DNA of 64,000 bases. Source: Dicyema japonicum. Lineage: Eukaryota; Animalia; Dicyemida. The notes beneath the pieces are model-generated. The model saw only the letters and a program-made list of their open reading frames with translations. It was not told the DNA's origin and searched no databases. Both the position numbers and the translations under genes were made by a program. Position 1 is the first letter of the stretch. Each line of letters starts with the position of its first letter. The stretch spans positions 913,962 to 977,961 of the forward strand of contig RDEW01000018.1 of the NCBI GenBank assembly GCA_011109175.1. Reading direction: 5' to 3'. Positions 3,805-42,619 of the stretch are shown piece after piece.

Positions 3805-3909
3805 AAAACTGAATCAAAAGCACGTGCAATGTAATCTTTATAAATATAATTTTAAATAATTTAAAAAATATAATATAAATATTTTAAATAAGCTATTATA
3901 TAAAATGTC

Positions 3910-4780: not shown

Positions 4781-4886
4781 AAGTCCACGTTATAGACAGT
4801 AAAAAACAAAATAATCCGTAATTGGCGAAACAAAAAAAATTCAAAAAATCAAAATAAATAGAATTTAAAAATATAAATAAAAACTA

Positions 4887-6494: not shown

Positions 6495-6594
6495 CAGCAC
6501 ATGAACGTAGAATTCTTTTGGATTATTTATATTTTATTATATAAATTAAAAAATTAATATCACTATATTTTATTTCAAATATTATTATTTCAAA

Positions 6595-7325: not shown

Positions 7326-7485
7326 AACTATTCTTTTTCCATTTAAAATTTTGTAAAAAAAAAAAAATCGTTTAAGTGTTTTTATTTTTAATAAAACCGG
7401 GGAGGAGCATCGGGCCAAGATGAGGTCCCTGCTAGAGCGTGCTGGGATCACGTGATTAGTTAGTTTGTGTGACCGTGGTCTGGTG

Positions 7486-7503
7486 TTATTATTATTATTA
7501 TTA
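7486..7503 (+). repeat. (TTA)6 microsatellite, probably a retroelement tail
   Basis: Perfect (TTA)6 read directly from the sequence. The tail interpretation is inference. Confidence 0.6.
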
Positions 7504-8039
7504 ACTGGAAATTTTACTGTGTCGGCTCTCGGGAGGAGCACCGAAAAGGATGAGGCGGCTGCTTAAAGAGGCAACCCACAATCTCATTTATTTAGTCGGT
7601 GATTCTTGGTTTTAAATAAATAACTGGAAATAAGTGTCGGAAAATATCCAGATTGTTCCGGGTTTGCTTCTAGCTGCTGTCCATTCCGACTGAAGGTTTC
7701 CTGCATATACGACGTTTCTTGGCTTTACAAATGACCCCCGTCTTCAGTGATACCCACTAGTGACAGGATTGTCTTCAGGGACTCACACGCAACAATAAGA
7801 AAAAAATAAATTGAGAAAAATCTATATTTTGGCTTCAGGTATTTCATATCTCGTTTGGCCATAAATAAATAAGCTTTATCGATTTACTGTAATTAACAGA
7901 GGAATTAACATTTTTAATCAATGTGTGCTTGCACTGCATTTTCAATGTTATCTTTATTTAAAATGGTTCGCCAACAACAAAATTTAATTAATTTTTAATT
8001 TTAAAAACCTTAAGACCACTAAGAAAGAAATGATAACTC

Positions 8040-10130
8040 ACTAATTAGGTGATCCCATCCTCCAAAATCTCCCGAATTTTCCTTGAATGTTCCTTCAGCG
8101 ACCAAACTGACCTCAGGAAGTTCCTTCTTTGTGTCTGCAGAGGAACTCTATCGGAGTACACTTCTTTATGGTCGATCTGAATTCCTCTTCATGTGCCGCC
8201 TTTCTAACCCTGGTCATTTCTCAACGAGGTCGCTTCTGAAAAGAAACTGGGGATGGATCTACTATGATCCAGCTAAACCTCCACCTAACCCTAAGCTAAG
8301 GAGAAGGAAATAATGCTCGATAATCTGTTTTATCTTATATTATAGGTTCGATAACACTGCCTACCTTAATTTGGACCCTGCTGTTCTCAGCTACAGATTC
8401 CATCTTATGAGTCCGCAACTGTCTGGTGTGGCGAACACCATACTAGTGCATAGTAGAAGATGAAGACTCATGACTACCACGTTATGCCTCCATACTTAGC
8501 ATGCAAAAAAGATCTGATAGTGGCTAGGTGGGTTGCCCGTGTTTTCTCGGTCGTTATTATGGCGTGCTTCCTAGCACAAACACTTCTCCCAGCTATCAGT
8601 GTGTCGTGCAATCGCATAAGGATCTGCTCACTTAGTTGGACTAATCCACAAGGCTAAATTTATCACGGGGTAAATATAGTCTTTCCTTGGATGCCAGCAC
8701 ATGGAAATTCAGTAATTTGTTTCTTCGTCTCAGGCATTATAAGGGACTTTGGAGTTTCGGTAACACCAAGATACTTATCCTTCGTGTTCCTCTAGGACTC
8801 TTACTAACTCGCTACATACTTGCGTGTTAGACGCAGACTTTGAATAATTCAAATCTAGTCCTATACTCTCAAAGAATTCACTGGCACAGACCACCATGGA
8901 GTAGAGCTCCTCGGCTGTTCTAGTATACATCTTCAGGTCATCGATAAAAAAGAAGGTGATTTGTACTGAAACAAACACCCTCACAATCAACTGATATTTG
9001 CCAAACTGGGTCATTGGGGCGGTGACTCATTAGAAGAGAATTGGATTGGCCTCGACAAAGCTCATGACCTCATCAACCATCAATTTGGTCATCAGCTTAT
9101 ACTGGGTTGGCATGAGGATATCGATCGATAATCTGCAGCAGACTGAGGGTTGTCCAGCTTTAGGATCAAATTGTTTCGGTGCAGGCCCAATCAGGAATTG
9201 TTTCTTGGTTAGTGATGTTTTCTGTAATACGCGACACATAGACTCGTGCAATGAAATGCATCTTCTGATAAATTATACACTTTATCTACCCCGGTCGTTT
9301 CCCAATCGGAAAGACGTCTCACTATCGCCTCAAATTTCTTGCAAAATCGAAAATTCTGCAAGATTCCGCCAAGAAAGGAGCGGTGCTGTACGGGAAATTC
9401 CACGCATTACCGAGTCCTGTTGGAAACATGCACTATGGCCATTTTCGTGTAGGTGACGGTATAACAATCTGAGATTAAACTCAAGCAGATTATTTTTCCT
9501 CTTCTTCACTTACACCGACTTTCATGAGCATAGAGTTTCCTCTTATACACCATTATTGTCCTCCCCAATTTTTTAAGGTCGCATTTGGGAATACGGAGTT
9601 TACTAAGTAACCCTTATACTATAGGCGGTGCTCTTCCTTTAACCCCTCTCGCCACACTTGTACTTGTACGTCGACTCCTAGTAGGTGATCTGTGCTGAAT
9701 ACATTACTAGGGAGATGTTACCCAGTGACTTTATTGGATTAGCTTCCATCGCATAAGCCACAGCCTTTTTAATACAGGTTAACACTACTCAGATAACTAT
9801 ACTACGAGGGATCTTGCGAGTAAATCTTTGGTCCCTAGGGAAAATCTGCCGTTGCAGCGAGATTCAGCGCAAAGCTTGAGCTGCAACGTATCACAGCTCT
9901 GATACTATTGCTTTCTTTGACAGTTGTGATCATCTGGTCCCCGCCCCCTTTAGAGCAGAACTGCTCGTCTGACCCTCTTTGTCTACAGCAATGTTCTTGA
10001 GTTCACTCAGATATAGCAGTACTGAATCTGCCACTGCAGAGCTCCGCCAAATATGGCCAGCCATTCAAGAGCATCCAGGATAGCATGCTACTTGGTATAG
10101 TTATATATTATACTAAAGATAGCTCTTGCC
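8040..10130 (-). mobile_element. Decayed, internally deleted RLE-type (R2/R4-like) non-LTR retrotransposon with its 5' end next to the first tRNA-like gene
   Basis: N-terminal MVYKRKLYAHESR, RT motif FFIDDLKMY..IGLDLNYSKSA..EGYKYLG (8775-9014), and a C-terminal region homologous to 30450-31050. Confidence 0.8.
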
Positions 10131-10249
10131 CATAGCGAGATCGATGTTCTGGAAGTGCTACCAGTATAAACGAATAAGATGTTCGAGAAAGCGAAGACTA
10201 TAAGTAGAAAGTTTTTTCAATTTTTTGAAAAAAATAAACATCATAAAAA

Positions 10250-10325
10250 TGGTCCCCGACCGGATTCGAACCGGCAACATAGTGACTTTGAAACCACTGC
10301 TCTAAAAATTGGAGCTACGAGGACC
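10250..10325 (-). tRNA. Atypical tRNA-like gene, type 1 (UUUCAAAG loop), copy 1
   Basis: GGTCCTCG/CGGGGACC 8-bp acceptor plus A, D stem GCTC/GAGC, T arm GCCGG-TTCGAAT-CCGGT, followed by a T-run. The anticodon arm is non-canonical. The D loop reads CAATTTTTA here and CAATGTTTA in the other copies. Confidence 0.7.
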
Positions 10326-10476
10326 ATTTCTATTGTTCTATATTCCTATTAGCCTCTGCATCTCAATATCCTTGGTATGATCTCCCTTTTTCCAATCCTG
10401 GATCCTCAATTAACGAAACAGTAGTACAATAATCATGCAACGAAATGTACAATCAATAAAACTTTATTCGAGTTGC

Positions 10477-11530
10477 ATGCATCGTTGTGATTGTAGTGGT
10501 CGAAATACAAGACTCACTATCGAACAAAAAATGCAAATATTGCGTTATAATGACGACAACAACATATTATAATGCAAAGAATTGCTGATAAAATTCCTTT
10601 TTTAAAACTGAAAAATTGCAGAAAGACTGTTAACTTATCTAAATATGTCGCGAGTCAAATTTGAAACAATTCAAAACTAAAAACTCTTCAACAAAAACAG
10701 TCAAAAATTTAAAAGTTTCCGCAACTGATGAAAAGCTCGTTAAGTGAATGGATTTGATAGATTCAAAAGGTTTACTTAATGTTTTTAAATTTTAAAGTGC
10801 ATTATTGCCATGTAAAACAGAATTCTTTGTTAAGCTCTTTCTCTAGACTATTTCAAAAAATCATGGATTATAATCCATATTTAAGAAAATGGATTAATTT
10901 TAGATTAGGAAATTACACGGACAAATGTGTACACACAATAATGTCGACATTGAAAGGTTTTTCAAAGAATTTAAAGAGGTTTCAAAATCATATACCTGCA
11001 TCAGATTTATTACCTGGATAAAACTGGTCTTTTTACAAGCTTTTTCCATCAAGAAGTAGTATTCGCAAGACTCCATTTGGAGGATAAAAGAAATTAAAAG
11101 ATAGAGTATCTGTGAAGTCATTCACAAATATTTTTGGAAATCATAAAATAATGGCGTTTATTCATTGGAAAATCAAAATGTAAAATGTTTCAGAAAATAT
11201 GATCATCGGTATTCTGTTTCATCTTATAATGCCAAAGATCGTCTACTTTATTTTACGACGTATTATTCTTTAGTCTAGTCTCATACCAGGCACAGAGACA
11301 TCGATTCTGAGTTTCAAAAGTCAATAGGTTTGTTAGATGAAAAGGCCTAATAATATTAACACCAGAGACTACGGTTAATCAAACTAACTATTCACGTTAT
11401 ATCAGCACGCACTAGCATAGATCTCATCTTGGCCCGATGCTCTTTCCTCGACCCTAAACAACCACGTGTTGGTCGATTGACATAAGGCAGCTTATATCAG
11501 ATGCAGCAAGGGATGGTATTCTATCAAATT
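10477..11530 (+). mobile_element. Decayed pogo/Tigger (CENP-B-like, DDE_1) transposase, submonomer A
   Basis: Stitched frames give RLTIEQKMQILRY (CENP-B N-terminal HTH), DEKLV.WMDL (Tc5 HTH), KLHGQMC, IYNLDKTGLFYK (N.DETGL motif) and KKFKDRVSV. Sister copies lie at about 15829-16880, 21174-22220 and 26513-27560. Confidence 0.8.
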
Positions 11531-11689
11531 AGAGCAAAAGTAAAAGTCTTTAATTATCATTTAATAATCATGAAAATTAGCAGTCAATATTAAATTAATA
11601 ATATTCCCAAATTTTAAGCCACATCACCCTTTAATATCAGGTCGATCACCTTTAGGCTTTTTATGCGTTTTTTACGATTTGAATTTATT

Positions 11690-12240
11690 TTGGGTTCTGC
11701 TGAATTCTTATCAAAGTCAAGGAAGGAAACTAGTTTAAAACATTCGGTTAATTTTCCGTTGTAGATCTCCTACCATAGTAAGTAGGAAAACCTCAGGAAC
11801 TTCCAAACATTTCGATACCTGTTCTAGCTCACTAGTTACACGGTATTGAGTTTCACTTTTTTTAGGAATCTTTAATATCTCAATATTCAGAGTGTTAAAA
11901 TTATCTACGTAATTCTCTACCCTATCAGTCATACTACTATTACTCACATCCGCCATACTACTTATTTGTTATTCAAGTGCTTCCAGCTCTGTCTGTCTCC
12001 ATGCATTCATGGCTAAGATCTGCTCCCTCCATTTACGTGGAGGTCTGTTCTAGTACGTCAACTCAACGTAGGTGATCTGTTTTGGATACATCACATTGGA
12101 GATGTGACCAGATGATTTTACTGGCTAGTTTTGCCGGACTGACTATGCCACTGCCTAGCTTCGCCAAGTATAGCCAGCTATTCAAGAGCATCCAGGATAG
12201 CATGCTACTTGGGTATAGTTATATATTGTGCTAAAGATAG
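11690..12240 (-). mobile_element. 5'/N-terminal fragment of the RLE-type element, present downstream of every full tRNA-like copy
   Basis: Nearly identical to 10010-10130, then deletes ~270 bp and rejoins at the CAGATCACCTA block (9680-9730). Encodes PVKSSGHISNVMY..QITY..KWREQ. Recurs at about 15130-15480, 17030-17580, 22380-22930, 27720-28270, 34630-35180, 41870-42420 and 49440-49990. Confidence 0.7.
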
Positions 12241-12368
12241 CTCTTGCCCAAATCGAGATCGATTTAATGGGAGTGGTACCAGTATAAACGAATAAGATGT
12301 TCGAGTAAGCGAAGACTATAAGTAGAAAGTTTTTTCTATTTTTTGAAAAAATTTAAACATCAAAAAAA

Positions 12369-12444
12369 TGGTCCCCGACCGGATTCGAACCGGCAACATA
12401 GTGACTTTGAAACCACTGCTCTAAACATTGGAGCTACGAGGACC
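12369..12444 (-). tRNA. Atypical tRNA-like gene, type 1, copy 2
   Basis: Same 76-nt sequence with a T7 terminator. Confidence 0.7.
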
Positions 12445-12595
12445 ATTTCTATTGTTCTATATTCCTATTAGCCTCTGCATCTCAATATCCTTGGTATGAT
12501 CTCCCTTTTTCCAATCCTGGATCCCCAATTAACGAAACAGTAGTACAATAATCATGCAACGAAATGTACAATCAATAAAACTTTATTCGAGTTGC

Positions 12596-13670
12596 ATGCA
12601 TCGTTGTGATTGTAGTGGTCGAAATACAAGACTTACTATTGAACAAAAAATGCAAATATTGCGTTATAATGACGGCAACAACATATTATAATGCCAAAGA
12701 ATTGCTGATAAATTTTCCTTTTTCTAAAGTGAACATTTGCCGGAAAACAGTTATCCTTATCTTAATATATCGAGAGTCAATTTTAAAACAATTCAAATCT
12801 AAAAACTTTTCAACAAAAACAGTCAAAAAGTAAAAGTTTCCCCAACTTGATGAAAAGCTTGTTGAGTGGATGGATTTGATGGAATCAAAAAGCTTTCTTA
12901 AAGTTTTTTTAATTTTAAAGTGCATTAGTGCTATGTAAGGCAGAATATCCATTAAGATAAAATTCTTCGCTAAGAAACGATCTCTTGACTATTTCAAAAA
13001 CTCTTATGGAGTTGTATAAAAATTTAAAATAAGAAATTAAATTCGGATTAGGGAATTACATGGACAAATGTGCACACACAAAAGCGTCGACATTGAAGGG
13101 TTTTTCAGATTTTCAAGAGGTTTCAAAATCATATACCTGCGATCAGATTTATAACTGGAAGAAAATGGGATTTTTAAAAGCTTATTCCATCCAGAAGTAT
13201 CTGCAAGAATCCATTCGGAGGATAAAAGAAATTCAAAGATAGAGTATCTGTGATGTTATGCACAAATATGTTAGGAAATCATAAATTAAAGCTCACTATT
13301 CATTGGAAAATCAAAAAAGTGCAAAGTGTTTCAAAAAATATTATTATCGGTGTTCTGTTTCGTATTACAGTGCCAAAGAGCGTCTACTTAATTTTACAGA
13401 GACATATTCTAAAGTCTACTGTCATAAGTGTCTCAGAGATATCGGTTCAGTGTTCTCCACAAATCAAAAGCTCCGTTACACTGAAAGCCTAATAATTTTA
13501 ACACCAGAGACCATGGTTACACAAACTAACTTATCACGTGATTCCAGCACGCACAAGCATGGACCTCAATTTGTCACGATGCTCCTCCCTCGACCCCACA
13601 CAAGCACGTATCGGTCGATTCACCTATGGTAGTTTACATCAAATGCAGCAAGGGAGGGTTTTCTAGCAAT
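12596..13670 (+). mobile_element. Decayed pogo/Tigger transposase, submonomer B
   Basis: LDEKLVEWMDLMESK, KFKDRVSVMLCTNMLGNHKLK and GKSK..CFKKY..YYSAK. Sister copies lie at about 17933-19010, 23281-24350 and 28626-29068 (truncated). Confidence 0.8.
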
Positions 13671-14061
13671 TTAAATCAATAGTAAAAGTCTTTAATTATC
13701 ATTTAATTATCATGAAAATTAGCAGTCAATATTAAATTAATAAAAACATTCAAATCCTAAGCCACATCACCCTTTAATAATCAGGTCGATGCACTTTAGG
13801 CATACTTATGCGTTTTTACGTGTTGACTTTATTTTAGGTTCTGCTGAAATCCTATCCAAGACAAGGAAATCAAGCTCGTTTAAAACATTCGGTTGATTTT
13901 CCGTTTAGATCCTAACCATAGTAGACTCGAAAACCTCAGGAACTTCCACAACTTTCGATGCCTGTACTGGCTCATTTGTACAACGGTATTGATTTTCACA
14001 TTTTTCTTAGGAATCTTTAATTTATCCAAATTCAGACCATCAAAATTATCCACGTCATCCT

Positions 14062-15125
14062 CAGGTTTGCCAATTTCACTAAATGGGTAAATAATCAAAT
14101 AAATAGTTTATTCGGCTGAGTTAGTAGAATTTTGTCATCTTCAATCGGAATAGAAACTTGGGAGCAATTTTTCTCAATTCCAACGTTCAGTCTTTTACCC
14201 CATTTGTTTACTAATCCACTTGTCTAAAACGTGTCTAAATAGCAGGAATCAGCTACCCATAGGAATCGGTATTTTCGTTTGAACTTGATTAATCAGTGAA
14301 TTCAACTCAGATCAGATATAGGTTCATAACATGCAGTTACTTCCTCCTATTTGAACAAATCACGTCAAAAACAATTTCCAAACGGCTTCCAAGAAACAGC
14401 TCAATGGAAACATAATCGAAGGGAAGTAGATACTTCCTCCTCTTACTTCTAGTAACATAGAGGACAGGAAAGCGTCCATACTTCTTATCACTTCAACCAC
14501 CAGACGGTCATAGTAAATACCTGCTTCAATAATGTGGTAATCCACTGTATGAACAGTGTGCACAAACCTAGTCACTATTTAATGTCAGAGAAATTCACGA
14601 ATCACATAAAGAAGTAGAAATAAATGGCACGCAGGAGAAAAAAACTGGGAGACTACAAGAGTTGGCGTTCTTCTAAATGACCACCTGTAGGTTTTAATAG
14701 TTCTTATGAATGGGATCTGTCTCCTATGAAAATAACTTAGATTGAAAAATTAGTACAGGATTTCACGCAGTGAGAAATTTAGAGTAAGAACCAAGAAACT
14801 CCTGATCAATACGAAAAAATTAATAATTGACAGATTCACTTATCAAAAAAGTCTAATCAATCATCTTGATTTATTACATTCTATAGTAAATTTTATTATA
14901 AAAGAATTTTTCCAATTTTTTATTAAGCTTTTTAAGAAAATCCTCATTTTTGGGGAAAACCTCAAAATTAGGGAATTTTACTTTATTTCGGGGTCGGACT
15001 TGAACATTTATGTTAAACCGTAGATGAGAAATTATTGACTCGACTATGAATAATGAGATTACTCGAAGACATATGAAATATCAACAACCTATCGAATGTC
15101 AAGTCCATTTTACAAACAAAAAGTA
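14062..15125. other. ~1.07 kb insertion of unknown origin interrupting the RLE fragment in the long submonomer
   Basis: Absent from the short submonomer, and both sides resume the ENYVDNF-coding segment. Also present at about 19400-20470 and 24740-25810. Confidence 0.55.
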
Positions 15126-15601
15126 GCGTGTTAAAATTATATACGTAATTCTCTACCCTATCAGTCATACTACTTCTACCCCATCCGCCATACTACTTAT
15201 TTGTTATTACAGTGCTTCATGCTCTGTCTGTCTCCATGCAATCATGGCAAAGAGCTGCTCCCTCCAATTACGTGGTGGTCTGTTCTAGTACGTCAACTCA
15301 ACGTAGGTGATCTGTTCTGGATACATCACATTATAGATGTGACCAGATAATTTTACTGGCAGTTTTGCTGGACAGATTATGCCACTGCAGAGCTCCTCCA
15401 ATTATGGCCAGCCATTCAAGAGCATCCAGGATAGCATGCTACTTGGGTATAGTTATATATTGTGCTAAAAATAGCTCTTGCCCAAAGCGAGATCGATTTA
15501 ATGGGAGTGGTACCAGTATAAACGAATAAGATGTTCGAGTAAGCGAGAACTATAAGTAGAAAGTTTTTTCTATTTTTTGAAAAATTTAAACATCAAAAAA
15601 A

Positions 15602-15677
15602 TGGTCCCCGACCGGATTCGAACCGGCAACATAGTGACTTTGAAACCACTGCTCTAAACATTGGAGCTACGAGGACC
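15602..15677 (-). tRNA. Atypical tRNA-like gene, type 1, copy 3
   Basis: Same 76-nt sequence. Confidence 0.7.
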
Positions 15678-17705
15678 ATTTCTATTGTTCTATTTTCCTA
15701 TTAGCCTCTGCATCTCAATATCCTTGGTATGATCTCCCTTTTTCCAATCCTGGATCCCCAATTAACGAAACAGTAGTACAATAATCATGCAACGAAATGT
15801 ACAATCAATAAAACTTTATTCAAGTTGCATGCATCGTTGTGATTATAGTGGTCGAAATACAAGACTCACTATCGAACAAAAAATGCAAATATTGCGTTAT
15901 AATGACGACAACAACATATTATAATGCAAAGAATTGCTGATAAATTTTCTTTTTTCAAAACCGAAAATTTGCAGAAAGACTGTTAACTTATCTTAATATG
16001 TCGCGAGTCAAATTTGAAACAATTCAAAACTAAAAACTCTTCAACAAAAACGTCAAAAATTAAAAAGTTTCCGCAACATGATGAAAAGCTTGTCAAGTGA
16101 ATGGATTTGATAGATTCAAAAGGTTTACTTAATGTTTTTAAATTTTAAAGTGCATTATTGCCATGTAAAACAGAATTCTTTGTTAAGCTCTTTCTCTAGA
16201 CTATTTCAAAAAATCATGGATCATAATCCATATTTAAGAAAATGGATTAATTTTAGATTAGGAAATTACACGGACAAATGTGTAAACACAATAATGTCGA
16301 CATTGAAAGGTTTTTCAAAAAATTTAAAGAGGTTTCAAAATCATATACCTGCATCAGATTTATTACCTGGATAAAACTGGGCTTTTTACAAGCTTTTTCC
16401 ATCAAGAAGTAGTATTCGCAAGACTCCATTTGGAGGATAAAAGAAATTCAAAGATAGAGTATCTGTGAAGTCATTCACAAATATTTGTGGAAATCATAAA
16501 ATAATGGCGTTTATTCATTGGAAAATCAAAATGTAAATGTTTCAGAAAATATGATCATCGGTATTCTGTTTCGTCTTATAATGCCAAAGATCGTCTACTT
16601 TATTTTACGACGTATTATTCTTTAGTCTAGTCTCATACCAGGCACAGAGACATCGATTCTGAGTTTCAAAAGTCAATAGGTTTGTTAGATGAAAAGGCCT
16701 AATAATATTAACACCAGAGACTACGGTTAATCAAACTAACTATTCACGTTATATCAGCACGCACTAGCATAGATCTCATCTTGGCCCGATGCTCTTTCCT
16801 CAACCCTAAACAACCACGTGTTGGTCGATTGACATAAGGCAGCTTATATCAGATGCAGCAAGGGATGGTATTCTATCAAATTAGAGCAAAAGTAAAAGTC
16901 TTTAATTATCATTTAATAATCATGAAAATTAGCAGTCAATATTCCCAAATTTTAAGCCACATCACCCTTTAATATCAGTTCGATCACCTTTAGGCTTTTT
17001 ATGCGTTTTTTACCATTTGAATTTATTTTGGGTTCTGCTGAATTCTTATCAAAGTCAAGGAAGGAAACTAGTTTAAAACATTCGGTTAATTTTCCGTTGT
17101 AGATCTCCTACCATAGTAAGTAGGAAAACCTCAGGAACTTCCAAACATTTCGATACCTGTTCTAGCTCACTAGTTACACGGTATTGAGTTTCACTTTTTT
17201 TAGGAATCTTTAATATCTCAATATTCAGAGTGTTAAAATTATCTACGTAATTCTCTACCCTATCAGTCATACTACTATTACCCCATCCGCCATACTACTT
17301 ATTTGTTATTCCAGTGCTTCCAGCTCTGTCTGTCTCCATGCATTCATGGCTAAGATCTGCTCCCTCCATTTACGTGGAGGTCTGTTCTAGTACGTCAACT
17401 CAACGTAGGTGATCTGTTTTGGATACATCACATTGGAGATGTGACCAGATGATTTTACTGGCTAGTTTTGCCGGACTGACTATGCCACTGCCTAGCTTCG
17501 CCAAGTATAGCCAGCTATTCAAGAGCATCCAGGATAGCATGCTACTTGGGTATAGTTATATATTGTGCTAAAGATAGCTCTTGCCCAAAGCGAGATCGAT
17601 TTTCTGGGAGAGGTACCAGTATAAACGAATAAGATGTTCGAGTAAGCGAAGACTATAAGAAGAAAGTTTTTTCTATTTTTTGAAAAAATTTAAACATCAA
17701 AAAAA

Positions 17706-17781
17706 TGGTCCCCGACCGGATTCGAACCGGCAACATAGTGACTTTGAAACCACTGCTCTAAACATTGGAGCTACGAGGACC
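17706..17781 (-). tRNA. Atypical tRNA-like gene, type 1, copy 4
   Basis: Same 76-nt sequence. Confidence 0.7.
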
Positions 17782-20700
17782 ATTTCTATTGTTCTATATT
17801 CCTATTAGCCTCTGCATCTCAATATCCTTGGTATGATCTCCCTTTTTCCAATCCTGGATCCCCAATTAACGAAACAGTAGTACAATAATCATGCAACGAA
17901 ATGTACAATCAATAAAACTTTATTCGAGTTGCATGCATCGTTGTGATTGTAGTGGTCGAAATACAAGACTCACTATCGAACAAAAAATGCAAATATTGCG
18001 TTATAATGACGACAACAACATATTATAATGCCAAAGAATTGCTGATAAATTTTCCTTTTTCTAAAGTGAACATTTGCCTGAAAACAGTTAACCTTATCTT
18101 AATATATCGAGAGTCAATTTTAAAACAATTCAAATCTAAAAACTTTTCAACAAAAACAGTCAAAAAGTAAAAGTTTCCCCAACTTGATGAAAAGCTTGTT
18201 GAGTGGATGGATTTGATGGAATCAAAAAGCTTTCTTAAAGTTTTTTTAATTTTAAAGTGCATTAGTGCTATGTAAGGCAGAATATCCATTAAGATAAAAT
18301 TCTTCGCTAAGAAACGATCTCTTGACTATTTCAAAAACTCTTATGGAGTTGTATAAAAATTTAAAATAAGAAATTAAATTCGGATTAGGAAATTACATGG
18401 ACAAATGTGCACACACAAAAGCGTCGACATTGAAGGGTTTTTCAGATTTTCAAGAGGTTTCAAAATCATATACCTGCGATCAGATTTATAACTGGAAGAA
18501 AATGGGATTTTTAAAAGCTTATTCCATCCAGAAGTATCTGCAAGAATCCATTCGGAGGATAAAAGAAATTCAAAGATAGAGTATCTGTGATGTTATGCAC
18601 AAATATGTTAGGAAATCATAAATTAAAGCTCACTATTCATTGGAAAATCAAAAAAGTGCAAAGTGTTTCAAAAAATATTATTATCGGTGTTCTGTTTCGT
18701 ATTACAGTGCCAAAGAGCGTCTACTTAATTTTACAGAGACATATTCTAAAGTCTACTGTCATAAGTGTCTCAGAGATATCGGTTCAGTGTTCTCCACAAA
18801 TCAAAAGCTCCGTTACACTGAAAGCCTAATAATTTTAACACCAGAGACCATGGTTACACAAACTAACTTATCACGTGATTCCAGCACGCACAAGCATGGA
18901 CCTCAATTTGTCACGATGCTCCTCCCTCGACCCCACACAAGCACGTATCGGTCGATTCACCTATGGTAGTTTACATCAAATGCAGCAAGGGAGGGTTTTC
19001 TAGCAATTTAAATCAATAGTAAAAGTCTTTAATTATCATTTAATTATCATGAAAATTAGCAGTCAATATTAAATTAATAAAAACATTCAAATCCTAAGCC
19101 ACATCACCCTTTAATAATCAGGTCGATGCACTTTAGGCATACTTATGCGTTTTTACGTGTTGACTTTATTTTAGGTTCTGCTGAAATCCTATCCAAGACA
19201 AGGAAATCAAGCTCGTTTAAAACATTCGGTTGATTTTCCGGTTAGATCCTAACCATAGTAGACTCGAAAACCTCAGGAACTTCCACAACTTTCGATGCCT
19301 GTACTGGCTCATTTGTACAACGGTATTGATTTTCACATTTTTCTTAGGAATCTTTAATTTATCCAAATTCAGACCATCAAAATTATCCACGTCATCCTCA
19401 GGTTTGCCAATTTCACTAAATGGGTAAATAATCAAATAAATAGTTTATTCGGCTGAGTTGGTAGAATTTTGTTATCTTCAATCGGAATAGAAACTTGGGA
19501 GCAAATTTGCTCAATTCCAACGTTCAGTCTTTTACCCCATTTGTTTACTAATCCACTTGTCTAAATCGAGTCTAAATAGCAGGAATCAGCTACCCATAGG
19601 AATCGGTATTTTCGTTTGAACTTGATTAATCAGTGAATTCAACTCAGATCAGATATAGGTTCATAACATGCAGTGACTTCCTCCTCTTTGAACAAATCAC
19701 GTCAAAAACAATTTCCAAACGGCTTCCAAGAAACAGCTCAATGGAAACATAATCGAAAGGAGGAAGGGAAGTAGATGCTTCCTCCTTTACTTTTAGTAAC
19801 ATAGAGGACAGGAAAGCGTCCATACTTGCTTATCACTTCAACCACCAGACGGTCATAGTAAATACCTGCTTCAATAATGTGGTAATCCACTGTATGAACA
19901 GTGTGCACAAACTGAGTCACTATTTAATGTCAGAGAAATTCACGAATCACATAAAGAAGTAGAAATAAATGGCACGCAGGAGAAAAAAAATGGGAGACTA
20001 CAGGAGTTGGCGTTCTTCTAAATGACCACCTGTAGGTTTTAATAGTTCTTATGAATGGGATCTGTCTCCTATGAAAATAACTTAGATTGAGAAATTAGTA
20101 CAGGATTTCACGCAGTGTGAAATTTAGAGTAAGAACCAAGAAACTCCTGATCAATACGAAAAAATTAATAATTGACAGATTCACTTATCAAAAAAGTCTA
20201 ATCAATCATCTTGATTTATTACATTCTATAGTAACTTTTATTATAAAAGAATTTTTCCAATTTTTTATTAAGCTTTTTAAGAAAATTTGCATTTTTCGGG
20301 AAAACCTCAAAATTAGGGAATTTTCCTTTATATCGGGGTCGGACTTGAACATTTATGTTGAACCGTAGACGAGAAATTATTGACTCGACTATGAATGATG
20401 AGGTTACTCGAAGACATATGAAATATCAACAACCTATCGAATGTCAAGTCCATTTTACAAACAAAAAGTAGCGTGTTAAAATTATATACGTAATTCTCTA
20501 CCCTATCAGTCATACTACTTTTACCCCATCCGCCATACTACTTATTTGTTATTACAGTGCTTCATGCTCTGTCTGTCTCCATGCAATCATGGCAAAGAGC
20601 TGCTCCCTCCATTACGTGGTGGTCTGTTCTAGTACGTCAACTCAACGTAGGTGATCTGTTCTGGATACATCACATTATAGATGTGACCAGATAATTTTAC

Positions 20701-20945
20701 TGGCAGTTTTGCTGGACAGATTATGCCACTGCAGAGCTCCGCCAATTATGGCCAGCCATTCAAGAGCATCCAGGATAGCATGCTACTTGGGTATAGTTAT
20801 ATATTGTGCTAAAGATAGCTCTTGCCCAAAGCGAGATCGATTTAATGGGAGTGGTACCAGTATAAACGAATAAGATGTTCGAGTAAACGAGAACTATAAG
20901 TAGAAAGTTTTTTCTATTTTTTGAAAAATTTAAACATCAAAAAAA

Positions 20946-21021
20946 TGGTCCCCGACCGGATTCGAACCGGCAACATAGTGACTTTGAAACCACTGCTCTA
21001 AACATTGGAGCTACGAGGACC
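20946..21021 (-). tRNA. Atypical tRNA-like gene, type 1, copy 5
   Basis: Same 76-nt sequence. Confidence 0.7.
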
Positions 21022-23053
21022 ATTTCTATTGTTCTATTTTTCCTATTAGCCTCTGCATCTCAATATCCTTGGTATGATCTCCCTTTTTCCAATCCTGGAT
21101 CCCCAATTAACGAAACAGTAGTACAATAATCATGCAACGAAATGTACAATCAATAAAACTTTATTCAAGTTGCATGCATCGTTGTGATTATAGTGGTCGA
21201 AATACAAGACTCACTTTCGAACAAAAAATGCAAATATTGCGTTATAATGACGACAACAACATATTATAATGCAAAGAATTGCTGATAAATTTTCTTTTTT
21301 AAAACTGAAAAATTGCAGAAAGACTGTTAACTTATCTAAATATGTCGCGAGTCAAATTTGAAACAATTCAAAACTAAAAACTCTTCAACAAAAACAGTCA
21401 AAAATTAAAAGTTTCCGTAACTGATGAAAAGCTCGTTAAGTGAATGAATTTGATAGATTCAAAAGGTTTACTTAATGTTTTTAAATTTTAAAGTGCATTA
21501 TTGCCATGTAAAACAGAATTCTTTGTTAAGCTCTTTCTCTAGACTATTTCAAAAAATCATGGATCATAATCCATATTTAAGAAAATGGATTAATTTTAGA
21601 TTAGGAAATTACACGGACAAATGTGTACACACAATAATGTCGACATTGAAAGGTTTTTCAAAAAATTTAAAGAGGTTTCAAAATCATATACCTGCATCAG
21701 ATTTATTACCTGGATAAAACTGGGCTTTTTACAAGCTTTTTCCATCAAGAAGTAGTATTCGCAAGACTCCATTTGGAGGATAAAAGAAATTCAAAGATAG
21801 AGTATCTGTGAAGTCATTCACAAATATTTTGGAAATCATAAAATAATGGCGTTTATTCATTGGAAAATCAAAATATAAGATGTTTCAAAAAATATGATCA
21901 TCGGTATTCTGTTTCGTCTTATAATGCCAAAGATCGTCTACTTTATTTTACGACGTATTATTCTTTAGTCTAGTCTCATACCAGGCACAGAGACATCGAT
22001 TCTGAGTTTCAAAAGTCAATAGCTTTGTTAGATGAAAAGGCCTAATAATATTAACACCAGAGACTACGGTTAATCAAACTAACTATTCACGTTATATCAG
22101 CACGCACTAGCATAGATCTCATCTTGGCCCGATGCTCTTTCCTCGACCCTAAACAACCACGTGTTGGTCGATTGACATAAGGCAGCTTATATCAGATGCA
22201 GCAAGGGATGGTATTCTATCAAATTAGAGCAAAAGTAAAAGTCTTTAATTATCATTTAATAATCATGAAAATTAGCAGTCAATATTAAATTCCCAAATTT
22301 TAAGCCACATCACCCTTTAATATCAGGTCGATCACCTTTAGGCTTTTTATGCGTTTTTTACGATTTGAATTTATTTTGGGTTCTGCTGAATTCTTATCAA
22401 AGTAAAGGAAGGAAACTAGTTTAAAACATTCGGTTAATTTTCCGTTGTAGATCTCCTACCATAGTAAGTAGGAAAACCTCAGGAACTTCCAAACATTTCG
22501 ATACCTGTTCTAGCTCACTAGTTACACGGTATTGAGTTTCACTTTTTTTAGGAATCTTTAATATCTCAATATTCAGAGTGTTAAAATTATCTACGTAATT
22601 CTCTACCCTATCAGTCATACTACTATTACTCCATCCGCCATACTACTTATTTGTTATTCCAGTGCTTCCAGCTCTGTCTGTCTCCATGCATTCATGGCTA
22701 AGATCTGCTCCCTCCATTTACGTGGAGGTATGTTCTAGTACGTCAACTCAACGTAGGTGATCTGTTTTGGATACATCACATTGGAGATGTGACCAGATGA
22801 TTTTACTGGCTAGTTTTGCCGGACTGACTATGCCACTGCCTAGCTTCGCCAAGTATAGCCAGCTATTCAAGAGCATCCAGGATAGCATGCTACTTGGGTA
22901 TAGTTATATATTGTACTAAAGATAGCTCTTGCCCAAATCGAGATCGATTTTCTGGGAGTGGTACCAGTATAAACGAATAAGATGTTCGAGTAAGCGAAGA
23001 CTATAAGTAGAAAGTTTTTTCTATTTTTTGAAAAAATTTAAACATCAAAAAAA

Positions 23054-23129
23054 TGGTCCCCGACCGGATTCGAACCGGCAACATAGTGACTTTGAAACCA
23101 CTGCTCTAAACATTGGAGCTACGAGGACC
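23054..23129 (-). tRNA. Atypical tRNA-like gene, type 1, copy 6
   Basis: Same 76-nt sequence. Confidence 0.7.
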
Positions 23130-26100
23130 ATTTCTATTGTTCTATATTCCTATTAGCCTCTGCATCTCAATATCCTTGGTATGATCTCCCTTTTTCCAAT
23201 CCTGGATCCCCAATTAACGAAACAGTAGTACAATAATCATGCAACGAAATGTACAATCAATAAAACTTTATTCGAGTTGCATGCATCGTTGTGATTGTAG
23301 TGGTCGAAATACAAGACTTACTATTGGACAAAAAATGAAAATATTGCGTTATAATGACGGCAACAACATATTATAATGCCAAAGAATTGCCGATAAATTT
23401 TTCTTTTTCTAAAGTGAACATTTGCCGAAAACAGTTAACCTTATCTTAATATATCGCGAGTCAATTTTAAAACAATTCAAATCTAAAAACTTTTCAACAA
23501 AAACAGTCAAAAAGTAAAAGTTTCCCCAACTTGATGAAAAGCTTGTTGAGTGGATGGATTTGATGGAATCAAAAAGCTTTCTTAAAGTTTTTTTAATTTT
23601 AAAGTGCATTAGTGCTATGTAAGGCAGAATATCCATTAAGATAAAATTCTTCGCTAAGAAACGATCTCTTGACTATTTCAAAAACTCTTATGGAGTTGTA
23701 TAAAAATTTAAAATAAGAAATTAAATTCGGATTAGGAATTACATGGACAAATGTGCACACACAAAAAGCGTCGACATTGAAGGGTTTTTCAGATTTTCAA
23801 GAGGTTTCAAAATCATATACCTGCGATCAGATTTATAACTGGAAAAAATGGGATTTTTAAAAGCTTATTCCATCCAGAAGTATCTGCAAGAATCCATTCG
23901 GAGGATAAAAGAAATTCAAAGATAGAGTATCTGTGATGTTATGCACAAATATGTTAGGAAATCATAAATTAAAGCTCACTATTCATTTGAAAATCAAAAA
24001 AGTGCAAAGTGTTTCAAAAAATATTATTATCGGTCTTCTGTTTCGTATTACAGTGCCAAAGAGCGTCTACTTAATTTTACAGAAACATATTCTAAAGTCT
24101 ACTGTCATAAGTGTCTCAGAGATATCGGTTCAGTGTTCTCCACAAATCAAAAGCTCCGTTACACTGAAAGCCTAATAATTTTAACACCAGAGACCATGGT
24201 TACACAAACTAACTTATCACGTGATTCCAGCACGCACAAGCATGGACCTCAATTTGTCACGATGCTCCTCCCTCGACCCCACACAAGCACGTATCGGTCG
24301 ATTCACCTATGGTAGTTTACATCAAATGCAGCAAGGGAGGGTTTTCTAGCAATTTAAATCAATAGTAAAAGTCTTTAATTATCATTTAATTATCATGAAA
24401 ATTAGCAGTCAATATTAAATTAATAAAAACATTCAAATCCTAAGCCACATCACCCTTTAATAATCAGGTCGATGCACTTTAGGCATACTTATGCGTTTTT
24501 ACGTGTTGACTTTATTTTAGGTTCTGCTGAAATCCTATCCAAGACAAAAAAATCAAGCTCGTTTAAAACATTCGGTTGATTTTCCGGTTAGATCCTAACC
24601 ATAGTAGACTCGAAAACCTCAGGAACTTTTACAACTTTCGATGCCTGTACTGGCTCATTTGTACAACGGTATTGATTTTCACATTTTTCTTAGGAATCTT
24701 TAATTTATCCAAATTCAGACCATCAAAATTATCCACGTCATCCTCAGGTTTGCCAATTTCACTAAATGGGTAAATAATCAAATAAATAGTTTATTCGGCT
24801 GAGTTGGTAGAATTTTGTTATCTTCAATCGGAATAGAAACTTGGGAGCAAATTTGCTCAATTCCAATGTTCAGTCTTTTACCCCATTTGTTTACTAATCC
24901 ACTTGTCTAAAACGAGTCTAAATAGCAGGAATCAGCTACCCATAGGAATCGGTATTTTCGTTTGAACTTGATTAATCAGTGAATTCAACTCAGATCAGAT
25001 ATAGGTTCATAACATGCAGTTACTTCCTCCTATTTGAACAAATCACGTCAAAAACAATTTCCAAACGGCTTCCAAGAAACAGCTCAATGGAAACATAATC
25101 GAAGGGAAGTAGATACTTCCTCCTCTTACTTCTAGTAACATAGAGGACAGGAAAGCGTCCATACTTGCTTATCATTTCAACCACCAGACGGTCATAGTAA
25201 ATACCTGCTTCAATAATGTGGTAATCCACTGTATGAACAGTGTGCACAAACCTAGTCACTATTTAATGTCAGAGAAATTCACGAATCACATAAAGAAGTA
25301 GAAATAAATGGCACGCAGGAGAAAAAAACTGGGAGACTACAGGAGTTGGCGTTCTTCTAAATGACCACCTGTAGGTTTTAATAGTTCTTATGAATGGGAT
25401 CTGTCTCCTATGAAAATAACTTAGATTGAGAAATTAGTACAGGATTTCACGCAGTGAGAAATTTAGAGTAAGAACCAAGAAACTCCTGATCACTAAGAAA
25501 AAATTAATAATTGAGAGATTCACTTATCAAAAAAGTCTAATCAATCATCTTGATTTATTACATTCTATAGTAACTTTTATTATAAAAGAATTTTTCCAAT
25601 TTTTTATTAAGCTTTTTAAGAAAATTTGCATTTTTCGGGAAAACCTCAAAATTAGGGAATTTTCCTTTATATCGGGGTCGGACTTGAACATTTATGTTAA
25701 ACCGTAGATGAGAAATTATTGACTCGACTATGAATGATGAGGTTACTCGAAGACATATGAAATATCAACAACCTATCGAATGTCAAGTCCATTTTACAAA
25801 CAAAAAGTAGCGTGTTAAAATTATATACGTAATTCTCTACCCTATCAGTCATACTACTTTTACCCCATCCGCCATACTACTTATTTGTTATTCCAGTGCG
25901 TCATGCTCTGTCTGTATCCATGCAATCATGGCAAAGAGCTGCTCCCTCCATTTACGTGGTGGTCTGTTCTAGTACGTCAACTCAACGTAGGTGATCTGTT
26001 CTGGATACATCACATTATAGATGTGACCAGATAATTTTACTGGCAGTTTTGCTGGACAGATTATGCCACTGCAGAGCTCCGCCAATTATGGCCAGCCATT

Positions 26101-26285
26101 CAAGAGCATCCAGGATAGCATGCTACTTGGGTATAGTTATATATTGTGCTAAAGATAGCTCTTGCCCAAAGCGAGATCGATTTTCTGGGAGTGGTACTAG
26201 TATAAACGAATAAGATGTTCGAGTAAGCGAGAACTATAAGTAGAAAGTTTTTTCTATTTTTTGAAAAATTTAAACATCAAAAAAA

Positions 26286-26361
26286 TGGTCCCCGACCGGA
26301 TTCGAACCGGCAACATAGTGACTTTGAAACCACTGCTCTAAACATTGGAGCTACGAGGACC
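26286..26361 (-). tRNA. Atypical tRNA-like gene, type 1, copy 7
   Basis: Same 76-nt sequence. Confidence 0.7.
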
Positions 26362-28398
26362 ATTTCTATTGTTCTATTTTCCTATTAGCCTCTGCATCTC
26401 AATATCCTTGGTATGATCTCCCTTTTTCCAATCCTGGATCCCCAATTAACGAAACAGTAGTACAATAATCATGCAACGAAATGTACAATCAATAAAACTT
26501 TATTCGAGTTGCATGCATCGTTGTGATTATAGTGGTCGAAATACAAGACTCACTATCGAACAAAAAATGCAAATATTGCGTTATAATGCCGACAACAACA
26601 TATTATAATGCAAAGAATTGCTGATAAATTTTCTTTTTTAAAACTGAAAATTTGCAGAAAGACTGTTAACTTATCTTAATATGTCGCGAGTCAAATTTGA
26701 AACAATTCAAAACTAAAAACTCTTCAACAAAAACGTCAAAAATTAAAAAGTTTCCGCAACTGATGAAAAGCTTGTCAAGTGAATGGATTTGATAGATTCA
26801 AAAGGTTTACTTAATGTTTTTAAATTTTAAAGTGCATTATTGCCATGTAAAACAGAATTCTTTGTTAAGCTCTTTCTCTAGACTATTTCAAAAAATCATG
26901 GATCATAATCCATATTTAAGAAAATGGATTAATTTTAGATTAGGAAATTACACGGACAAATGTGTACACAATAATGTCGACATTGAAAGGTTTTTCAAAA
27001 ATTTAAAGAGGTTTCAAAATCATATACCTGCATCAGATTTATTACCTGGATAAAACTGGGCTTTTTACAAGCTTTTTCCATCAAGAAGTAGTATTCGCAA
27101 GACTCCATTTGGAGGATAAAAGAAATTCAAAGATAGAGTATCTGTGAAGTCATTCACAAATATTTGTGGAAATCATAAAATAATGGCGTTTATTCATTGG
27201 AAAATCAAAATGTAAGATGTTTCAAAAATATGATCATCGGTATTCTGTTTCGTCTTATAATGCCAAAGATCGTCTACTTTATTTTACGACGTATTATTCT
27301 TTAGTCTAGTCTCATACCAGGCACAGAGACATCGATTCTGAGTTTCAAAAGTCAATAGCTTTGTTAGATGAAAAGGCCTAATAATATTAACACCAGAGAC
27401 TACGGTTAATCAAACTAACTATTCACGTTATATCAGCACGCACTAGCATAGATCTCATCTTGGCCCGATGCTCTTTCCTCGACCCTAAACAACCACGTGT
27501 TGGTCGATTGACATAAGGCAGCTTATATCAGATGCAGCAAGGGATGGTATTCTATCAAATTAGAGCAAAAGTAAAAGTCTTTAATTATCATTTAATAATC
27601 ATGAAAATTAGCAGTCAATATTAAATTAATAATATTCCCAAATTTTAAGCCACATCACCCTTTAATATCAGGTCGATCACCTTTAGGCTTTTTATGCGTT
27701 TTTTACGATTTGAATTTATTTTGGGTTCTGCTGAATTCTTATCAAAGTAAAGGAAGGAAACTAGTTTAAAACATTCGGTTAATTTTCCGTTGTAGATCTC
27801 CTACCATAGTAAGTAGGAAAACCTCAGGAACTTCCAAACATTTCGATACCTGTTCTAGCTCACTAGTTACACGGTATTGAGTTTCACTTTTTTTAGGAAT
27901 CTTTAATATCTCAATATTCAGAGTGTTAAAATTATCTACGTAATTCTCTACCCTATCAGTCATACTACTATTACCCCATCCGCCATACTACTTATTTGTT
28001 ATTCCAGTGCTTCCAGCTCTGTCTGTCTCCATGCATTCATGGCTAAGATCTGCTCCCTCCATTTACGTGGAGGTCTGTTCTAGTACGTCAACTCAACGTA
28101 GGTGATCTGTTTTGGATACATCACATTGGAGATGTGACCAGATGATTTTACTGGCTAGTTTTGCCGGACTGACTATGCCACTGCCTAGCTTCGCCAAGTA
28201 TAGCCAGCTATTCAAGAGCATCCAGGATAGCATGCTACTTGGGTATAGTTATATATTGTGCTAAAGATAGCTCTTGCCCAAATCGAGATCGATTTAATGG
28301 GAGTGGTACCAGTATAAACGAATAAGATGTTCGAGTAAGCGAAGACTATAAGTAGAAAGTTTTTTCTATTTTTTGAAAAAATTTAAACATCAAAAAAA

Positions 28399-28474
28399 TG
28401 GTCCCCGACCGGATTCGAACCGGCAACATAGTGACTTTGAAACCACTGCTCTAAACATTGGAGCTACGAGGACC
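28399..28474 (-). tRNA. Atypical tRNA-like gene, type 1, copy 8
   Basis: Same 76-nt sequence. Confidence 0.7.
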
Positions 28475-29966
28475 ATTTCTATTGTTCTATATTCCTATTA
28501 GCCTCTGCATCTCAATATCCTTGGTATGATCTCCCTTTTTCCAATCCTGGATCCCCAATTAACGAAACAGTAGTACAATAATCATGCAACGAAATGTACA
28601 ATCAATAAAACTTTATTCGAGTTGCATGCATCGTTGTGATTGTAGTGGTCGAAATACAAGACTCACTATCGAAAAAAAATGCAAATATTGCGTTATAATG
28701 ACGACAACAACATATTATAATGCCAAAGAATTGCTGATAAATTTTCATTTTTCTAAAGTGAACATTTGCCGAAAACAGTTAACCTTATCTTAATATATCG
28801 CGAGTCAATTTTAAAACAATTCAAATCTAAAAACTTTTCAACAAAAACAGTCAAAAAGTAAAAGTTTCCCCAACTTGATAAAAAGCTTGTTGAGTGGATG
28901 GATTTGATGGAATCAAAAAGCTTTCTTAAAGTTTTTTTAATTTTAAAGTGCATTAGTGCTATGTAAGGCAGAATATCCATTAAGATAAAATTCTTCGCTA
29001 AGAAACGATCTCTTGACTATTTCAAAAACTCTTATGGAGTTGTATAAAAATTTAAAATAAGAAATTAAACGGGCAACATAATAGTACGTCATACCACTGC
29101 TAACAAATAAAAAAACGAATATTAGCAAAAAATTTTTTTCAGAATCCGTGAATCATATTAATATATGAAAGATCGTGAGAATAAAAATATAGATCACAGT
29201 CACAACAAAACTTATAAACCACACAGATATACAAACCTGTGTAGGCACTCGACAAAGTAAGAAATATCAAATAATTAGAAGCCTTCTTCACATGCATCCA
29301 CATAGACAAAAATGAGTTTTTGTGAGACAAAAAAATTTACATGTTGATCAAAGCCTATTCCTTTGCCTCCTGACAAATTCGCACAGTTCCAAATCGATTC
29401 ACGGTAAAAATCCCACTGCTTCTAGAAAGCCGTTGACCTCATTAGCCACCAATTTAGTCATTATTGCCACAACGCTCTCGGATATGCCAGGAATAGTAAT
29501 ATTAGATCTGGTAACGTAAGTGAACCTTCTATTTATCCATTCACATAAATAACAAAATTTAAAATATTTTATAAATAATAATTAGGAAATAATTATTATA
29601 AAAAAATTACTTGGAGCCTTTAAATTTAGATTTTTAAACGTCGACAAAAAAGTTTTAAACAATTCTTTGAAAAACACTTTAAAGTATATTTTAAATTTTA
29701 TAATACTCCATAATGCATATTTGGATGATCTTGGAATGCTGATTATAATTTACTCAATTGAAATAATTTTATTTTACTTTTGAATCAAATTCTATATTAT
29801 TTTAATCTGATTTGTGTATTGAGGTTAATCAACGTGATATTTACATTGTGATTTTTTAAGATTTAAGTTAAGGTATATAAGAAATTATACACTTTAAGAC
29901 TGACTCAAAAAACATTAGTCTATTTTATATATTATAATATATATAGTTTTTGCCAGAAGGAAAATG

Positions 29967-30226
29967 GATGTTCTTGAAGTGCTACCAGCATTTACAAATA
30001 AGATGCTCGAGAAAGCGAAGACTATAAATAGAAAGTTTTTTTTTATTTCTTTAAAAAACTTTATACATTAAAAATACAATTAATAGTCCTCAATCTGATT
30101 TGAACCGGACAATTATAGCGTTAACCACTGCTCTAATCATTGTAGGTAGGAGGACCATTTCTTTTGTTCAATAAGTCTTTGATTATCATTTAATATCACA
30201 AAATAGCAGTTAATAAATTAATAATA
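29967..30226 (-). pseudogene. Degenerate ~260 bp derivative of the module: tRNA-like relic (30084-30156) fused to the pogo 3' flank
   Basis: GATGTTCTTGAAGTGCTACCAG..GCGAAGACTATA left flank, then a decayed GGTCCTC..TTAGAGCAGTGGT..GGTTCAAATC..TGAGGACT, then AAGTCTTT.ATTATCATTTAAT matching 11545-11600. Confidence 0.7.
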
Positions 30227-42542: not shown

Positions 42543-42619
42543 TGGCCCTCGACCGGATTCGAACCGGCAACATAATAGTACGTCATACCACTGCTCTAAA
42601 CATTGGAGCTACGAGGACC
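42543..42619 (-). tRNA. Atypical tRNA-like gene, type 2 (loop ATGACGT, anticodon position GAC)
   Basis: As above; a T-run follows. Confidence 0.65.

Follow-up and report, generated by a model that had tools for sequence, protein, structure and literature searches.

A tandemly amplified family of tRNA-like genes with two alternative anticodon arms in Dicyema japonicum

A family of transfer RNA (tRNA)-like genes occupies a large part of a 64,000-nucleotide stretch of the genome of the dicyemid Dicyema japonicum (assembly GCA_011109175.1, contig RDEW01000018.1, positions 913,962 to 977,961 of the forward strand), which we refer to as the window and in whose coordinates all positions are given. 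Several described systems can be compared with it. Selenocysteine tRNAs (tRNA-Sec) have acceptor and T stems of 9 and 4 bp in eukaryotes and of 8 and 5 bp in bacteria, suppressors of the sufD, sufA6 and sufB2 type differ from canonical tRNAs only by an extra base inserted into the loop, and small RNAs of the mascRNA type are tRNA-like molecules cut out of longer transcripts. Tandem arrays of tRNA genes are known from Entamoeba (reviewed in PMC2888827), frameshift-suppressor tRNAs with 8-nt anticodon loops have likewise been reviewed (PMC5009743), and the Helenus and TRIMp3 elements are long terminal repeat (LTR) elements with a tRNA-like promoter for RNA polymerase III (Pol III; PMC10886601). 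The family reported here shares features with each of these systems and differs from all of them. We tentatively favour the view that it represents a tRNA-like Pol III gene, multiplied by tandem duplication, whose structure is under constraint and which probably does not decode. Behind this we rank, in descending order, a passively co-amplified pseudogene, a module or target of mobile elements, and a working decoder.

Gene copies and their predicted fold

The preliminary description of the locus listed eight copies at positions 10250–28474. A probe of 19 nt from the 5′ end of the reported sequence, for which zero chance matches are expected, has 11 matches in the window, all on the minus strand: the eight reported copies and three additional ones, which have the same body and a different anticodon arm (hereafter C-type, the arm of the other eight being AB-type). 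The array is thus considerably longer than first described, reaching 52.7 kb and including a second arm type. A covariance model built from the copies and run against all 64 kb detected, besides the 11 intact copies, only two relics. The respective features are as follows, the 5′ end of each copy being its higher coordinate.

10010–52701, minus strand: the whole tandem array, with 11 intact copies and two relics
10250–10325, minus strand: copy 1, AB-type arm, D-loop G to T; the last unit of the array, with a high-copy retrotransposon at +317
12369–12444, minus strand: copy 2, AB type, at the start of a 2.1-kb A unit
12362–12368, minus strand: run of seven T after copy 2, a signal resembling a Pol III terminator
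15602–15677, minus strand: copy 3, AB type, at the start of a 3.2-kb B unit
17706–17781, minus strand: copy 4, AB type
20946–21021, minus strand: copy 5, AB type
23054–23129, minus strand: copy 6, AB type
26286–26361, minus strand: copy 7, AB type
28399–28474, minus strand: copy 8, AB type
29072–29101, minus strand: 30-nt fragment of a C-type anticodon arm, identical to 42566–42595
30084–30156, minus strand: decayed copy (c12x), 60.6 bits to the family model, six broken pairs and a 4-nt deletion; used as a neutral comparator
35304–35380, minus strand: copy 9, C-type arm, 7-nt loop AUGAGGU ('GAG')
42543–42619, minus strand: copy 10, C-type arm, loop AUGACGU ('GAC')
50116–50192, minus strand: copy 11, C type, two C to U changes in the 5′ strand of the acceptor stem, each still forming a G:U pair

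Alignment confirms that copies 2–8 are identical, that copy 1 differs from them by the single D-loop change, and that a run of at least five T directly follows all 11 copies, starting 1 nt past the acceptor stem. A perfect B box (GGTTCGAATCC) is likewise present in every intact copy and the A box is partial, so the genes carry what look like the usual Pol III signals, in agreement with what had been proposed. Of the two relics, c12x does not fold as a cloverleaf; its homology to the other units, at ~77% identity, spans only about −20 to +225, i.e. the gene and ~150 nt downstream. The other is a weak covariance-model match at 29060–29136, where the surroundings of the exact 30-nt fragment are just faintly tRNA-like.

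The minimum-energy fold of the gene is a cloverleaf (z-score −3.3 to −3.6) with an acceptor stem of 8 bp, a D stem of 4 bp with a 9-nt loop, a T stem of 5 bp and a variable region of 5 nt, and none of its 23 base pairs is non-standard in any of the 11 intact copies. The 8+5 bp acceptor and T stems and the lack of a long variable arm were correctly recognized from the start, as was the ambiguity of the AB-type anticodon arm, which is predicted to form either 5 bp with an 8-nt loop or, with a sixth pair (U:G), a 6-nt loop. The C-type arm forms 6 bp with a 7-nt loop that has U33 and a purine at position 37; two further pairs, A32:U38 and U33:G37, are possible within this loop and would extend the hairpin to 8 bp and reduce the loop to 3 nt.

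Judged against a canonical tRNA, the cloverleaf has the four paired stems, U8 and the entire canonical T loop, and the 7-nt anticodon loop is found in the three C-type copies only, the eight AB-type copies lacking it. The D loop has lost G19 and gained an extra C ahead of A14, so that the Rfam alignment places C at A14 and U at G19; copy 1 lacks G18 as well. The Rfam tRNA model (RF00005) scores all 11 copies at 32.6–38.5 bits, which exceeds the gathering score of 29 and yet is low, as a typical tRNA is expected to score well above 33–38 bits; the check by a tRNA model that the preliminary description called for is thus passed weakly. ARAGORN reports a tRNA with the 4-base anticodon 'tcaa' for seven of the eight AB-type copies (copy 1 being missed), and Leu-GAG or Val-GAC for the three C-type copies.

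The cloverleaf, the B box, the T-run terminator, the units of a few kilobases each bearing a tRNA-type gene and the Rfam hit above the gathering score all make the locus comparable to tRNA genes or pseudogenes in tandem arrays. It differs from cytosolic tRNAs, however, in the 6- or 8-nt anticodon loop of eight copies, the eight contiguous acceptor pairs, the missing G19, the extra C before A14, the presence of several unrelated arms on one body and the scores of 33–38 bits.

If the genes are active, Pol III would start from the internal B box together with the weakened A box and stop at the T-run 1–2 nt past the acceptor stem. The product, of ~76 nt, would fold into the cloverleaf, in which the acceptor (8 bp) and T (5 bp) arms would form an intact 13-bp helix bearing a canonical T loop, and it is this part that is recognized by RNase P, RNase Z and the CCA-adding enzyme. 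Pol III transcription and tRNA-type end processing depend on the B box, the terminator and the acceptor/T helix, all of which are intact; transcription, processing and any role in the cell are inferred. The anticodon arm would stand free as a hairpin whose loop has 6 or 8 nt in the eight AB-type copies and 7 nt in the three C-type copies. In its intact acceptor/T domain and an anticodon arm apparently free of decoding constraint, such an RNA would resemble mascRNA; unlike the latter, the gene has its own B box and terminator, and no A-rich or U-rich 3′-end element of the mascRNA type was seen by eye in the upstream flank.

Possible constraint on the stems

Six distinct intact lineages were available for a comparison of substitution rates, with the core flanks of the gene as the reference. 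In these flanks 88 of 508 sites are variable (17.3%), and the transition fraction is 0.48, i.e. transitions and transversions occur in a ratio of ~1:1. Eight stem positions have changed among the intact lineages, and each of the eight is a transition on one side of a pair that leaves the pairing standard; neither a transversion nor a broken pair was found in the stems of these lineages. Given the flank rate and transition fraction, ~5.8 pair-breaking changes would be expected in the 46 stem bases, compared with none observed (Poisson p ~0.003). Even when the four changes in the anticodon arm are counted as one event, leaving five events, the chance that all keep pairing is ~1e-3, and it rises to ~0.02–0.05 under the most lenient model, which takes into account that the 5′ strand consists entirely of G and U, so that any opposite transition keeps pairing. 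Furthermore, the seven A and B copies have no variable site in 76 nt, compared with 3.9 expected from their own flanks (p=0.02). The decayed copy c12x, with its six broken pairs and lost cloverleaf, provides a picture of free decay. We take these observations as moderate evidence, coming from few lineages, that the fold has mattered.

Several points weigh against this interpretation. The gene outside the anticodon arm evolves just mildly slower than its neighbours (5 of 58 sites variable, or 8.6%, vs the 88/508 of the flanks; p=0.095), and it lies inside a core of ~600 bp conserved over its full length (94–97%). Much of the identity among the copies is the result of young duplication, and gene conversion could also be the source of much of it. 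Four of the eight pair-keeping changes fall in the anticodon arm and are maybe a single event, only about four lineages are independent, and the G/U-only 5′ strand raises the chance of pair-keeping as just described. The locus is surrounded by transposon debris, it has no known partner or function, no RNA run in the index was found to contain it, and its transcription is unproven.

These points leave room for a dead tRNA pseudogene, a rival that we consider less probable than a constrained RNA but still a substantial one. According to this scenario, the D-loop invariants and the 7-nt loop disappeared from a tRNA gene, whose surrounding segment was then duplicated passively and homogenized by unequal crossing-over or gene conversion, and the pair-keeping reflects chance and transition bias. 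The 98–99% identity over whole higher-order units of 2–3 kb, which indicates a mostly young age, would fit such a history, as would a conserved zone extending far beyond the gene, a body rate merely ~2-fold under that of the flanks, the low Rfam scores with A14, G19 and the 7-nt loop missing, and the plain decay of c12x. It is less easily reconciled with the absence of pair-breaking substitutions where ~5.8 are expected, with the lack of any stem transversion despite the ~1:1 ratio in the flanks, with an anticodon arm that was replaced and yet is again a perfect hairpin, and with the terminator and B box being intact in 11 of 11 copies.

The preliminary description had left a suppressor, a structured RNA and a pseudogene side by side, and had named a flank-equal rate without stem bias as the outcome that would speak for a dead sequence. 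The overall rate is indeed flank-like, but the stem-preserving bias is strong and therefore favours a structured RNA over a dead pseudogene, without proving it; the suppressor is disfavoured for the reasons given below. Tentatively, then, we see the family as low-copy tRNA-derived genes that may have dropped out of ordinary decoding and may still be maintained as a folded RNA. Should this RNA be produced, the strongly reduced genome of a parasite would contain a tRNA-shaped non-decoding RNA with an unusual 8/5 helix, and the locus would clearly exemplify how short templated patches replace an anticodon arm, one route for tRNA-like genes to switch identity or exit from translation. Should it not be produced, the locus is a warning for tRNA annotation, showing that a perfectly paired, terminator-bearing 'tRNA' in 11 copies can be a relic, and an example of tandem arrays growing from transposon-rich DNA.

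Replacement of the anticodon arm and the question of decoding

Between the AB and C sub-arrays, the anticodon arm exhibits eight fixed differences and one indel within 18 nt, compared with 14 differences in the 508 sites of the flanks (Fisher 8e-8), and the arm is a good hairpin in both versions. The homology of the units stops at 29069, and at this very breakpoint lies the exact 30-nt copy of a C-type arm (29072–29101), which indicates that short templated patches covering the arm have moved within the array. Such movement is the simplest account of the arm swap, and the anticodon arm would accordingly have been exchanged as a templated patch of ~20–30 nt and not altered by gradual mutation. 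With the AB sub-array on one side and a junction-specific segment on the other, the fragment resembles filler or patch DNA from template switching. No donor of the AB arm was found in the window. The 30-nt fragment is clearly closer to the C-type arm, and c12x seems to be so too, its alignment being ambiguous; judging from these two relics, the UCA-centred AB arm may be the derived state.

A more far-reaching possibility, to which we give little credence, is that the family constitutes a modular tRNA-shaped Pol III scaffold, in which a fixed 13-bp acceptor/T helix and D arm would carry an arm cassette of ~20–30 nt exchanged between copies, different arms giving different specificities (a guide, a decoy, or a reader of UGA or UUGA). 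We know of no arm-cassette system of this kind described in animals.

Could the genes encode working decoders, with the AB type serving as an opal (UGA) suppressor or as a quadruplet (UUGA, +1 frameshift) suppressor and the C type as a Val-GAC tRNA? The UCA centred in the loop, the 4-base anticodon 'tcaa' given by ARAGORN, the 8-nt loop of the minimum-energy fold, the U33 and the purine 37 of the 7-nt C-type loop, the integrity of every stem and a 13-bp acceptor/T helix reminiscent of tRNA-Sec could all be cited in favour. Nevertheless, we regard this as the least probable of the explanations considered. The UCA-bearing copies all lack a 7-nt loop, having 6 or 8 nt instead; loops of GAC, GAG and UCA type occur on one and the same body, which no single synthetase identity fits; the 'anticodon' itself differs between copy 9 and copies 10 and 11; and the C-type loop can close into the 8-bp hairpin with a 3-nt loop. 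The missing G19 would weaken the elbow between the D and T loops, a C stands in the D loop where A14 belongs, the long variable arm for seryl-tRNA synthetase is missing, and the UCA-centred arm may, as the two relics suggest, be derived (with the ambiguity of c12x noted above). Moreover, Val and Leu tRNAs with G34 are unusual in eukaryotes. Nothing unusual is apparent in the one host gene fragment checked, which encodes a RhoGAP domain, although the genetic code itself was not tested.

The preliminary description had pointed to the UCA loop as matching that of tRNA-Sec. The 8+5 (13-bp) acceptor/T helix of every intact copy indeed has the bacterial form, a 6-bp anticodon stem is possible and the loop is centred on UCA, but membership in the tRNA-Sec family fails on other grounds: the variable region is 5 nt long and forms no long arm, the D arm has 4 bp and a 9-nt loop as opposed to 6 bp and 4 nt in tRNA-Sec, the anticodon loop is 6 or 8 nt long instead of 7, and the C-type sister copies have no UCA. 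As for frameshift suppressors, the predicted 8-nt loop could present the 4-base anticodon UCAA; here, however, the stem takes in position 26, the D loop departs from the norm (without G19 and A14) and paralogues carry other arms, and we regard the suppressor suggested earlier as unlikely.

Other tRNA identities were also explored. An origin from a bacterial tRNA-His (with G-1:C73) is unsupported: a strict pattern of the body has no match in the metagenomes of the Joint Genome Institute (JGI) or in 185,579 prokaryotic genomes, and a looser one matches bacterial Met, Phe, Thr and Arg tRNAs and no His tRNA, which indicates that the G-1:C73 appearance is no His signature. A likeness of the AB acceptor stem to eukaryotic tRNA-Trp was dropped, as c12x indicates that the U:G pair shared with tRNA-Trp is derived. 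Myxozoan mitochondria are devoid of tRNA genes (PMC11034133), and a nuclear gene for a mitochondrially imported tRNA-Trp(UCA) is a remote prospect here, given that the loop is not 7 nt long and the organism is probably no myxozoan. The myxobolid Henneguya salminicola has a GC content of 29.1% (PMC13644364), compared with 36.8% in the window.

Array structure, copy number and surroundings

The tRNA-like gene, read on the minus strand, marks the start of each unit. A units of 2.1 kb alternate with B units of 3.2 kb, which correspond to an A unit plus ~1.07 kb, and A and B together make up a 5.34-kb higher-order repeat that occurs 3.5–4 times and is 98–99% identical. Beyond this part lie three C units of 6.9–7.6 kb followed by a partial unit; the C units contain a long interspersed nuclear element (LINE) with endonuclease and reverse-transcriptase domains, and no transposon protein domains were found in the A and B unit bodies. 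Across A, B and C units, the ~600-bp core around the gene (−283 to ~+318) is 94–97% identical, whereas the rest of the unit is 82–85% identical. The flanks, which had been taken for dead transposon sequence, turn out to be mostly non-coding array sequence and not one dead transposon. A permissive Rfam scan of 10000–15700 (two units) recovered tRNA alone and no other RNA family.

6595–10009, minus strand: high-copy transposon debris bounding the array, with decayed reverse-transcriptase pieces
12127–12727, minus strand: example of the conserved core, around copy 2 (−283 to +318)
39177–41702, minus strand: LINE fragment (endonuclease and reverse transcriptase) in C unit 10, with homologous pieces at 31618–33204 and 47361–48490

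Copy numbers were estimated from depth in the four runs that contain the locus (X1–X4), all DNA contigs of one sample. X3 was scaled from the A-unit contigs, its depth over unique DNA being ~0.

Unique DNA at 6201–6594, word depth: X1 ~33; X2 ~319; X3 ~0 (too shallow); X4 ~31
A-unit contigs, copies: X1 ~5; X2 ~5; X3 taken as ~5 (word depth ~10–13); X4 3–5
tRNA-like position, copies: X1 10; X2 25; X3 ~8; X4 9
Transposon debris at 6595–10140: hundreds to thousands of copies in X1, X2 and X4; high but unscaled in X3

The tRNA-like family thus has ~8–25 copies per genome, compared with 600–2500 for the neighbouring transposons, and the stretch from +77 to +318 after the gene is low copy as well. 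Such a depth implies that the family is essentially confined to the array and is no short interspersed nuclear element (SINE), and it would owe its copy number to tandem duplication of 2–7 kb units as opposed to retroposition.

These data bear on the idea that the tRNA-like sequence is part or target of a mobile element, whether as the head of a SINE, as a tRNA-like Pol III promoter within an LTR (as in Helenus/TRIMp3), or as a small-RNA array in which site-specific retrotransposons land. Retrotransposon pieces do abound in the array, a very abundant reverse-transcriptase element in the same (minus-strand) orientation has its 5′ end at ~10009, i.e. at +317 from copy 1, the end of the array coincides with the end of the conserved core, and the restriction of the homology of c12x to about −20 to +225 looks as if a module made up of the tRNA and 150 nt had a history of its own. 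Animal LTR elements with tRNA-like sequences exist (PMC10886601); they resemble the present family in that a repeated block of a few hundred bp includes a tRNA-like sequence with A and B boxes, and in the inconsistency of isotype and anticodon. We nevertheless hold any such role to be improbable. The family has ~8–25 copies, as opposed to hundreds to thousands for the adjoining transposons; the T-run comes straight after the acceptor stem, unlike in SINE heads; the unit-specific insertions lie at +317, ~+550 and ~+758, and thus share no target site, the repeats of each insertion having come from duplication of the unit; a primer-binding site complementary to the tRNA-like RNA is absent; the A/B unit bodies are, as mentioned, free of transposon protein domains; and the 2.1-kb units and ~600-bp core exceed the largest Helenus (1263 bp, with LTRs of at most 323 bp; PMC10886601). 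The family differs from Helenus/TRIMp3 also in forming a single array and in the terminator that comes right behind the tRNA-like part.

More specifically, a dispersed family or SINE can be rejected on the basis of the depth, the position of the T-run and the lack of any other copy in the 64 kb according to the family model. A gene fixed upstream of an R4/Dong-like element is unsupported, as copy 1 alone abuts the abundant element and the supposed head (+77 to +318) is low copy. A small-RNA array serving as a retrotransposon target does not agree with insertions that have no fixed offset. A Helenus-type LTR is a weak candidate in view of the wrong sizes, the low copy number and the missing primer-binding site: no complement of the 3′ end of the tRNA-like RNA resembling such a site was found in the window (sites for other tRNAs were not searched systematically), LTR ends (TG..CA) and target-site duplications were not found by eye, and no polypurine tract was found.

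A few additional observations concern the array and its neighbourhood. The extra 1.07 kb of the B unit (12969–14035 and equivalents) is flanked by ~25 nt that can be aligned with either side of the A unit (unit positions 528–553). The segment was thus either inserted with a long duplication, or a deletion between direct repeats gave rise to the A unit. At least two units have, in their conserved upstream block, a plus-strand open reading frame (ORF) of 45 codons (10435–10572 and 12554–12691, with one amino-acid difference), probably a chance occurrence within a conserved block. The debris at 6595–10140 contains a restriction-like endonuclease motif recognized by eye (6595–7110, plus strand) and reverse-transcriptase pieces at ~8700–9300 (minus strand), neither of which is recognized by Pfam. 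On the other side of the array, a PIF1-like helicase fragment (57768–59219, plus strand; E 2e-35), adjoined by reverse-transcriptase pieces at 59627–60245 (minus strand), suggests a Helitron-type element. An integrase-core ORF at 60945–62063 (minus strand) includes a 246-bp tandem duplication (61588–62078, 96% identical); the window has two N, and this ORF has an X in its translation. The RhoGAP-domain exon mentioned above (262–591, minus strand; E 1.6e-9) is part of host genes at 47–6494. The GC content of the window is 36.8%, and the genome of D. japonicum has 36.7% GC and 49% repeats (PMC6736024).

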